From: Octopus bimaculoides
Taxonomy: Eukaryota
Assembly (NCBI RefSeq): GCF_001194135.2
Contig: NC_069003.1
Location: 22,258,703 to 22,322,702 of the forward strand
Direction of reading: 5' to 3'
Length of the DNA stretch: 64,000 nucleotides
Below are positions 51,801-54,800 of this stretch, piece by piece; position 1 is the first letter of the stretch, and every line of letters begins with the position of its first letter. Both the position numbers and the translations under genes were made by a program. A model generated the notes under the pieces. That model did not search any database and was not told the origin of the DNA. It saw only the letters and a program-made list of their open reading frames with translations.

Positions 51801-54800
51801 ATAAATAAGCATTACACTTGATAGAATAATCTGATTGCTAAAGAGCTGAAGTAGTGGTTCTCAATGATGTTTTTCCTATGATTCTTATTCTACGCAGATG
51901 GACCCCAAGAGCCATTCAATGTTTAAAAAATCCTATTATATTTTTATAATTCATCTAGCAAAAACCAATGTCTTAGTAAGTAGGAGAGCAGACAAATCAC
52001 AAATCCCTTCAGGTAGATGGCCCTGTTCAATCTGTAGGAAAGGTATTGGTAGAAACTCCATAAGATGTGTATGGTGCAAGCTAGACACATAAGAGGTGCA
52101 GCAATATCAGAGGAAGGTTAACTGGGAAAATAGCTTTTGCATGTTGAAGGTGCACAGGTACAATAAACACTGAAAATGTACAGAAAAAAAACTTCATCAA
52201 CTGCCAGGTGAGTAAGCTAGAGGTAGTAAATAGTTTCCATTATCTAGGTGGCCAAGTTAGTAGCAGAGGCAGATAATCCGAGAGCATAGCTGCAAGAATA
52301 AGAATAGGCTGGACAAAGTTCAGAGAGCTCCTACCTCTGCTGGCAACAAAGGGCCTCTCCCTCAGAGTGAAAGGCAGACTATATGATGCCTGTGTGCAAA
52401 CAGCTATGCTACATGGCAGTGAAACATGGGCTGTGACAGCTGAGGACATGCATAGGCTTGAAAGAAACAAAGCTAGTATGCTCCGCTGGATGTGCAATGT
52501 CAGTGTGCATGTATGACAGAGTGTAAGCATCTTGAGAAAAAAGTTGGGCATAAGGGGTATCAGATGTGGTTTGCAAGAGAGATGACTGCACTGGTATGGT
52601 CATGTGATGCATATGGATGAGGACAGCTATGTAAAGAAGTGCCAATCTCTAATTGTGGAGGGAACCTGTGGTGGAGGTAGACCCAGGAAGATATGAGATG
52701 AGGTGGTGATCATGTGTGATCATGTGTGTGTGTCTGTGCTTGTGTGTGTGTGTGTGTGAGAGAGAGATAGAGAGAGTATTTTTGTTAGAAATGCATGTCT
52801 AGGAAAATCTATTGTTTGCCATTTACCAGGATAACAATGATAATTATGATGGTGGTGACAGTGAAGATGGTGATGATAAGAATAGCGTCAAACTGTTGGA
52901 TGTTTCCAAGTAAATGGCTGAATGTAGACAGAGATTATGATTAATACACACCTCCGGGATTGAGTTCTCCTCCAGTTCATTCTTGTATGCCCATGCTGTG
53001 TACAACCGGAAGGATTTCCCTGCAGCCACTCTGCCAGCACGACCTGCACGCTGGTTTGCTGAAGCCTGTAATACCCCAAAAACAAAATAGAAAAAAGTTT
53101 CAATAACTGATAAGAACTGTCCAACAAGAAATATATATTTTAACTGTGAAATGCTTAGTGGTATTTTGTTCATCCTTATGTTCTGAGTTCAAATTCTGCC
53201 AAGGTTGATTTTGTGTTTTGTCCTTTCAAGGTTAATAAAATAGGTACCAGTTGAGCACTGAACTTGATGTAATTGACTTAACTTCTCCTGGGTAAGAGCA
53301 TAAAAAGAAACTGCACCCCTGTGCCAAGCCATGTCGAGCCAGTGTGGCAGAGTAGGCTCATCAAACCATTTTGATCTCAAGCTCAAACTCATGCCTTCCA
53401 TACCAAACCATGGCTGGTGGAGAGAACATGCTGAGGCCTTCGTCCTGCAGTGGACTGAACATTGGCAATCCAATCCAATCAATCCAACTAATATGTGCCT
53501 TACAGTACATATTTACACCAAGATGGACTGTGAAGAGAAGTGAACTTTGCCTTTTCATGAGACCTATTTACAAAGTAGGTAAAAAAAAATGCAGGCATGG
53601 CTGAGTGGTAACAAGCTTGCTTCCTGATCACATGGTTCTGGGTTCAGTCCCACTGAGTGACACCTTGGGCAAATGTCTTCTACAATAGCCTCAGGTTGAC
53701 CAAAGCCTCGTTAGTGGATTTAGTAGATGGAAACTGAAAGAAGCCCGTCATCATCATTGTTTGATGTCTACTTTCTATACTGGTTGGCATTGGTTGGATG
53801 ATTTGACATGGAGCTGGCCAGCTGGGAGCTGTCCAGACTCCAACTGTCTGTTGTGGCATGGTTTCTATGGCTGGATGCCCTCCTTAATGCCAACCACTTA
53901 ACAGAGTCTGCTGGGTGCTTTTCACATGTCACTGGCACAGTGTGCTGACACAGCACAGGCACAGGTGCTTTTTATGTGGCACTGACACCAGAAAGGACAA
54001 ACCTGTATGTGTGGAAGGTAGCGATTTTACTTAGCTTGATGCATCTTATATATATACACACACATATATGTGTGTGTGTGTGTCTTTATGTCCCATCACC
54101 ACTGCTTGACATCAGGTGTTGGTGTGTTTACATCTCCGTAACTTAGCAGTTCAGCAAAATAGACCAATAGAATAAGTACCAGGCTTAAAAAGTAACAAGT
54201 ACCGCGGTCGATTCGCTCAACTAAAAATTCTTCAAAGTGGTGCCCCAGCATAGCTGCAGTCTAATGATTGAAATAAGTAAAAAAAATTTTAAAAAGATAT
54301 AAAGTGTTGCTGACAAAACAGAACTGTCGAATCCATCATGGCTGGTAGGGCAGAAACAGTCCATGAATGTGGGCTGTTGCAACTCTCACCTGTTCTGGGA
54401 GCTACAAAACAATGGCTGAATGAAACTGAACTCTTCAGCCAACATTTTAATTAACTTTACAGTCACTAACAACCACTGTGATTGCAAGAGTTACTTTAGA
54501 TATTGGTGTCACAACAAGAGACTCCATGCCAGGAGTCTGGTAGGGCAGAAACAGTCATGAGTGTAGCCTTTTGTAACTCACACATGTTCTGGGATCTAGA
54601 AAAAACAATGGCTGAACAAAACTGTGAACTCATCAGCCAATATTTTAGTTAACTTTACAGTCACAACTAACAACCGCTGTTATTGTTTGACACTGAATGC
54701 AAGAGTTACCTTAGATATTGGTGTCACTACAAGAGACTCCATGCCAGTCCGGGCGTTGTAACTTTTCTGCTTACAGAAACCTGGATCGATGACATAGATG

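Follow-up and report, generated by a model that had tools for sequence, protein, structure and literature searches.

We have analysed a window of 64,000 nucleotides (nt) from Octopus bimaculoides (contig NC_069003.1 of assembly GCF_001194135.2, positions 22,258,703 to 22,322,702), where the gene for the helicase DHX16 contains, within one of its introns, a 42-nt segment that resembles a small exon. All positions below are those of this window. An earlier interpretation, made from the letters of the DNA alone (the sequence-only reading), had taken this segment for a candidate cassette exon built by tandem duplication, i.e., for an exon being born. DHX16 lies on the minus strand and extends from beyond 64000 down to ~48575. 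Both the gene and the genus Octopus were correctly recognised in that interpretation: the exon peptides of the window are exactly contained in the protein XP_014781219.1, named DHX16 by NCBI, and the stretch 52900–54900 is 100% identical to the locus of this protein on O. bimaculoides chromosome CM046623.1 (GCA_001194135.2). The exons encode the helicase motifs DEAHERT, SAT, TGQEE, TNIAETS and QRAGRAGR, and the best PDB match of the fragment around the segment is human DHX16 (5z56 chain x, residues 630–833, E = 5.5e-112 over 204 aa). With its DEAH motifs and this best match, the host gene is a clear DHX16/Prp2 orthologue.

The spliced mapping reproduces the entire annotated protein of the O. 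bimaculoides locus (P0243). The exons have been mapped exactly for O. bimaculoides (3018 coding nt) and for O. sinensis (3135 coding nt), and the gene of Sepia pharaonis has been mapped for the most part. Two exons matter here, namely exon V, which encodes helicase motif V, and exon VI, which encodes motif VI (Table 1). The end of exon V and the start of exon VI are both in phase 0, and the intron between them, intron 16, is 1.6 kb long. Further down the gene, nothing in the whole window matches its final exon (VIEIENQWLLEVAPHYY... in O. sinensis). The last exon present (48575–48630, minus strand) is followed, ~1.2 kb downstream, by a gap of 100 N (47295–47394), and the RefSeq protein of O. 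bimaculoides is labelled partial, with an end that reads into an intron.

Table 1 Features at the exon V/intron 16 boundary of DHX16 in the window; a slash marks the exon–intron boundary at a splice site
Feature	Position	Strand	Details
DHX16 exon V	54850..54710	minus	141 nt, 47 codons, helicase motif V; ends ACA CCA ATA TCT AAG; authentic donor AAG/GTAACT
Duplication unit A (parent)	54748..54537	minus	212 nt: last 13 codons of exon V, authentic donor, first 173 nt of intron 16; ends ...ctgtttctgccctaccag
Duplication unit B (copy)	54536..54342	minus	195 nt; 88–89% identical to A at aligned bases
42-nt stop-free pseudo-exon	54536..54495	minus	AG at 54538-54537, GT at 54494-54493; donor AAA/GTAACT
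7-bp perfect hairpin AGACUCC-UGGCAU-GGAGUCU	54519..54538	minus	-11.3 kcal/mol vs -4.4 for the parent
Strong donor-like site CAG/GTGAGAGT	54380..54392	minus	in copy B; last upstream nt 54390; U1 duplex -11.1 kcal/mol
DHX16 exon VI	53065..52952	minus	114 nt, motif VI; starts GCT TCA GCA AAC CAG CGT

On the minus strand, the junction at the segment reads ...ctgtttctgccctaccag/ACT CCT GGC ATG GAG TCT CTT GTT GTG ACA CCA ATA TCT AAA/gtaact. Inclusion of the segment would keep the reading frame, as its 42 nt are in phase 0 at both ends and contain no stop codon. This part of the sequence-only reading, i.e., an open frame of 14 codons with matching phases, can be read directly from the sequence. Flanked in this way by AG and GT, the segment could be a nascent in-frame cassette exon, included at a low level or only in some tissues, and the isoform would then have two copies of the RecA2 beta-hairpin's second strand and of the linker that leads to motif VI. 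We consider such an exon improbable, and the evidence on both sides of it is given along with the results below.

The two tandem units have been delimited by repeat search and MAFFT alignment. Units A and B show 81% identity over 212 columns when gaps are counted as mismatches, and since the blastn E value is 1e-52, their similarity is not due to chance. The proposed tandem duplication of ~200 bp, which copied the end of the exon together with its 5' splice site, is therefore confirmed. Unit B is set apart from unit A by three nt (CCT) inserted at the junction, by a deletion of 14 nt, and by a few further small indels. The Thr codon ACT belongs to the copied sequence (the parent reads R-T-G-M-E...), and the Pro codon CCT is the junction insertion; thus the segment consists of 13 inherited codons and one inserted codon. 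The AG that precedes the segment closes unit A and is ordinary intron sequence that has been brought beside coding sequence by the duplication. Actually, the same 20-mer, gactgtttctgccctaccag, ends unit A and likewise ends unit B.

In the loci compared, no further copy of the duplicated unit has been found anywhere, and each unit matches only its sister copy. As the sister copy is the sole match, an origin of the unit from a transposon or a dispersed repeat is ruled out. The remainder of intron 16 is made of multi-copy dispersed repeats. An Rfam scan of 52500–55500 for intronic snoRNAs or miRNAs, which might account for the persistence of the copy, has returned no family, only sub-threshold miRNA noise.

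Between units A and B of O. bimaculoides, the copied exonic part differs at 2 of 39 positions (GTA>GTT and AAG>AAA), and both changes are synonymous; that is, the copied codons are unchanged in protein terms in this species, which would favour the cassette exon. In the copied part of the intron, 17 of 152 aligned columns are substituted, and a further 22 columns contain gaps. Both descriptions agree with the sequence-only reading, which had reported two synonymous differences in the exonic part and several substitutions and indels in the intronic part.

The junction together with the CCT insertion also gives rise to the hairpin of Table 1, within which lie the AG and the 5 nt that open the segment. 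The inserted CCT extends a pre-existing quasi-palindrome of 4–5 bp, a pattern compatible with a templated insertion by template switch. The RNA fold of 54420–54620 as a whole is not significant (z = -1.57).

The duplication might in principle be an artefact of the assembly and be absent from the real genome, given that the assembly of this window is rich in gaps, with 16 runs of N. However, the closest gap is more than 2 kb away, and the two copies differ by ~11% and by several indels, unlike a mis-joined haplotype. In addition, the independent assembly of O. sinensis (GCA_006345805.1) has the duplication too, plus shared derived changes. An artefact is thus practically negligible.

For the comparison with other cephalopods, we have recovered by protein search the loci of O. 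sinensis (XP_029649976.1; L001), O. bimaculoides (L002), Argonauta hians (L003), and Sepia pharaonis (L004). In O. sinensis the duplication lies at the orthologous place, and it has in common with O. bimaculoides the ACTCCT junction, the GTT and AAA codons, and an intronic C>T change. A copy of the exon end has been found in the orthologous intron of neither Argonauta hians nor Sepia pharaonis. Its presence in O. sinensis indicates that the duplication predates the split of these two octopus species and does not come from the assembly. Furthermore, the intronic parts of A and B have diverged by 11.2%, compared with 3.5% for the orthologous A copies and ~5% for the whole intron between the species. 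As the divergence of A from B is ~2–3 times the orthologous one, the duplication is placed well before the species split.

The copy is not of the same length in the two species, as the distal ~110 nt of unit B are absent from O. sinensis, either through loss or because they were never there. In this region, 1068 nt of O. bimaculoides (~53411–54478, minus strand) correspond to 57 unalignable nt in O. sinensis (L001:22222–22278). The 1068-nt stretch comprises the rest of copy B and dispersed repeats that have many copies across both loci, and the difference may be either an insertion or a deletion.

The segment of O. sinensis reads ACT CCT GGC ATG GGG TCT CTT GTT GTG AGA CCA ATA TCT AAA, i.e., TPGMGSLVVRPISK. 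Its frame is therefore open in both octopuses, which is in favour of a cassette exon. On the other hand, the changes since the species split are two non-synonymous ones (GAG>GGG, E>G, and ACA>AGA, T>R) and no synonymous one, and the changed residues are otherwise restricted to E/D and T/V/S/M, respectively, across 33 DHX16 orthologues. The segment thus differs between the species at 2 of 42 positions (4.8%), the same as the neutral intron, while the real exon end differs at 1 of 39, and synonymously.

We have then looked for a contrast between the exonic and the intronic part of the copy, which the sequence-only reading had offered as hinting at selection. The difference between 2/39 and 17/152 in O. 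bimaculoides is not significant (Fisher p = 0.37), and the caution in that reading, that two synonymous changes are too few to prove selection, was well placed. For O. sinensis, the copied exonic positions depart from the parent at 5 of 39, and the adjacent 42 nt of copied intron at only one of 42, so that the pattern is the opposite of the hint. In other words, the check that had been proposed, to look for the duplication in another Octopus and to compare exon with intron divergence, finds the duplication and gives a result that goes against exon birth. Neither octopus comparison reveals purifying selection on the segment, and its coding capacity shows no sign of maintenance so far as these sequences tell. 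For the valine codon, the ancestral state cannot be polarised between GTA and GTT, as Sepia has GTT and Argonauta GTC.

A separate duplication has been observed in Argonauta hians, where three tandem units of ~145 bp lie just upstream of the real exon V (L003:14360–14890). Each unit has the exon V acceptor (ttatctgtttcag), the first 42 nt of the exon, and a CA-rich microsatellite, and the first unit is degenerate. Here, in another octopod, part of exon V has thus been duplicated in tandem independently and at its opposite end, and the annotated protein has this part once.

For the splice signals, we have taken as references the U1 duplex energy, the joint rule on G-1 and G+5, and the splice sites of the gene itself. 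Two classes of animal 5' splice sites are distinguished, one that agrees with the consensus on the exonic side of GU and one that does so on the intronic side (PMC11842720); the dependency between -1 and +5 used here rests on this source and on general knowledge. The donor of the segment, AAA/GTAACT, has neither G-1 nor G+5. None of the 58 credible DHX16 donors (20 from O. bimaculoides, 21 from O. sinensis, and 17 from Sepia) lacks both. Real donors without G-1 all have G+5 (e.g. GAA/GTAAGT and AAA/GTAAGG), and those without G+5 all have G-1 (e.g. AAG/GTAAAC and the parent AAG/GTAACT). Since the consensus is unmatched on the exon side as well as on the intron side, the segment donor belongs to neither class.

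The U1 duplex energy, which is a crude proxy, leads to the same picture. It is -3.2 kcal/mol for the segment donor, compared with -6.5 for the parent and -3.6 to -12.7 for the credible real donors. The sequence-only reading had noted that this donor is weaker than that of the parent, and it is actually even weaker than was thought, being below all 58 credible donors. In the 26 kb of the gene's introns, 486 of 1431 GTs (34%) are as good as or better than it. By this U1-pairing proxy, which is not a splicing assay, AAA/GTAACT does not qualify as a usable 5' splice site, and a donor that is the weakest of all compared argues against a cassette exon. The orthologous exon of Sepia pharaonis has AAA/GTAAGT as its authentic donor (L004:32872–32882), which indicates that A at -1 is tolerated only alongside a consensus intron side.

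A donor of this kind might still be rescued after transcription. Inosine pairs like G, and coleoid cephalopods are known for very heavy RNA editing in neural tissue. Conceivably, A-to-I editing of the -1 adenosine could restore a donor like AAG/GU and give a rare or tissue-restricted in-frame exon. We regard such a rare exon as very unlikely. No finding here supports such a route: the local fold is not significant, the -1 A lies outside any long duplex, and in O. sinensis the copy shows drift.

At the other side of the segment, the AG is less easily dismissed. The acceptor is a CAG with 12 pyrimidines in 17 positions, within the range of 8–17 at the gene's real sites, so the description of it as pyrimidine-rich stands, and it ranks in the top 7% of intronic AGs. 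A branch-point-like CTCAT motif is found ~22 nt upstream of the AG. This plausible acceptor is in favour of the cassette exon. The AG sits, however, inside the hairpin of -11.3 kcal/mol, and the intron upstream of the 42-nt segment would be only 173 nt long, compared with 311–4607 nt for the gene's real introns. Very short exons, moreover, need strong splice sites, and this general rule further reduces the chance that a 42-nt exon is recognised here.

The same acceptor might alternatively be joined to another donor. In copy B, a T>G change has made the near-consensus donor listed in Table 1 as a strong donor-like site, with which the AG at 54537 would define a 147-nt exon (54536..54390), the 30th codon of which is an in-frame TAA. 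Such a poison or cryptic exon, which would be confined to O. bimaculoides, would lead to a transcript subject to nonsense-mediated decay or to a truncated protein; it might be mere splicing noise or a means by which a splicing factor regulates itself. The donor-like site equals the best real donors in strength and is one of 10 intronic sites at or below -9 kcal/mol in 26 kb; it also lies 147 nt downstream of a decent acceptor, which is an exon-like spacing. Against this, the acceptor AG is buried in the hairpin, and strong pseudo-donors are frequent in long introns and mostly unused. Besides, the site is not conserved, because O. sinensis is missing that portion of copy B. Altogether we rate this exon as improbable too, marginally below the 42-nt cassette exon of the sequence-only reading. 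If anything is exonised here, the 147-nt version would be at least as likely as the 42-nt version.

At the protein level, both RefSeq proteins, XP_014781219.1 and XP_029649976.1, join TPISK directly to exon VI and skip the segment, and the 90%-identity cluster to which they belong holds just these two sequences. In protein searches for annotated or transcript-derived proteins, no match contains the 14-residue insert, and the only octopus matches are these two RefSeq models. A few short matches with extra residues between PISK and ASANQ (P0005, P0006, P0015, and P0020) have been considered as insert isoforms and rejected, since, judging from their sequences, they apparently come from genomic contigs of other animals and read through short introns.

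The insertion point corresponds to K716/A717 of human DHX16, four residues before motif VI. Among the 33 aligned DHX16 orthologues, which range from sponge and cnidarians to vertebrates including human, none has an indel there, and the sequence around it is nearly invariant. In the numbering of ctPrp2, the beta-hairpin spans 596–610 and Arg628 lies in motif VI (PMC6038383). By the offset from ctPrp2, the copied residues should be the second strand of the RecA2 beta-hairpin together with the linker into the motif VI helix.

We have further run AlphaFold2 on the RecA2 fragment with and without the segment, using the same 34-sequence alignment. Without the segment, the model has a pLDDT of 73.2 and a pTM of 0.71, with hairpin strands at 109–116 and 121–128 and a helix at 131–140 (motif VI). 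With the segment, these values drop to 55.4 and 0.50, and residues 108–168 fall below 50. The model is thus less confident over the hairpin and motif VI, which is soft evidence against a cassette exon, as AlphaFold confidence is not a measure of stability. Together with the defective donor and the drift in O. sinensis, the two RefSeq models and the absence of any indel in the 33 orthologues speak against the claim that an exon is being born here.

Based on the above analyses, the 42-nt segment is most likely a skipped pseudo-exon, a neutrally decaying relic of a tandem duplication across an exon–intron boundary. An old, lineage-specific duplication of ~200 bp across the boundary of exon V and intron 16 has left 13 codons and a donor within the intron. 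The segment would look like an exon only because it descends from one, and its open frame and its phase are inherited. The copied donor has lost its G at -1 (AAG>AAA) and would be disabled by this change, which is old, since it is found in both Octopus species. As the parent donor already lacked G+5, the loss of G-1 has left the copy with neither half of the U1 consensus. Since this donor is no better than background GTs, the whole 1.6-kb intron is most likely removed, with 54710 joined to 53065, and the segment would be skipped and drift neutrally.

It may even be speculated that the loss of G-1 was favoured, i.e., that selection has acted against splicing rather than for it. This is because an intact second AAG/GTAACT would extend exon V into the intron, where translation would run into a stop after nine codons (VTLAFSVKQ), before motif VI.

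Several points weigh against reading the segment as a skipped relic. The frame is still open in both octopuses, the acceptor is within the range of real sites, and the CTCAT motif lies upstream of it. One real DHX16 donor, GCA/GTTAGT (-3.6 kcal/mol), is almost as weak in U1 pairing as the segment donor, and the crudeness of the U1 proxy, like the softness of the AlphaFold comparison, bears on this reading as well. Annotated isoform sets also miss rare or tissue-specific events. Finally, the skipping of the segment, most likely as it is on the sequence evidence, has been deduced and not observed.

Intronic pseudo-exons have been described before (PMC8819188, PMC7175933), and the DHX16 segment is like them in being an exon-sized intronic piece flanked by AG and GT, outside the annotated mRNAs, and silenced by at least one weak site. 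At the level of annotation it is a pseudo-exon in this sense, since it lies within intron 16 and is absent from both annotated proteins. Most described pseudo-exons, however, come from unique intronic or transposon sequence, whereas the DHX16 segment descends from the neighbouring exon and has inherited its frame and codons.

Tandem exon duplication that leads to mutually exclusive or substituted exons (PMC9741552) is another related system, as it also involves a local, within-gene tandem copy of exonic sequence and is a recognised route to new alternative exons. In DHX16, by contrast, no whole exon has been duplicated: of the 47 codons of the exon, just the final 13 (39 nt) have been copied together with the donor, and inclusion would add to the parent exon and not replace it. 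In addition, the known substitution events are mostly ancient and highly expressed, whereas the DHX16 copy is known here from genome sequence.

New lineage-specific exons that arise from introns (Merkin et al., bioRxiv 10.1101/009282) are similar in that the candidate is a young, lineage-restricted internal exon in a conserved gene. The exons of Merkin et al. are defined by cDNA, whereas the DHX16 segment is defined by its sequence, and the donor it carries has become less like the consensus, not more. As for the RecA2 beta-hairpin of DHX16/Prp2 (PMC6038383; PDB 5z56 chain x), the host gene is orthologous, and the copied codons would correspond to its second strand and the motif VI linker; extra residues at the insertion point are seen in no known or aligned DHX16/Prp2.

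Elsewhere in the window, we have also observed a dispersed repeat on the minus strand (e.g. 3000–3149, 28545–28706, and 40348–40420), often after TA or CA microsatellites, which presumably is an octopus SINE-like element.

If the segment were spliced in, it would show, with a clean date, how partial duplication of an exon gives birth to another in the catalytic core of an essential spliceosome helicase, and would bear on how new exons arise as well as on the mechanics of DEAH-box helicases. The evidence points instead to the ordinary outcome, in which a duplicated splice signal has been disarmed and is decaying. There remains a lesson for annotation, of modest value. In repeat-rich cephalopod genomes, open, in-frame, splice-flanked segments beside real exons can be relics of duplication, and calling them exons needs junction reads.

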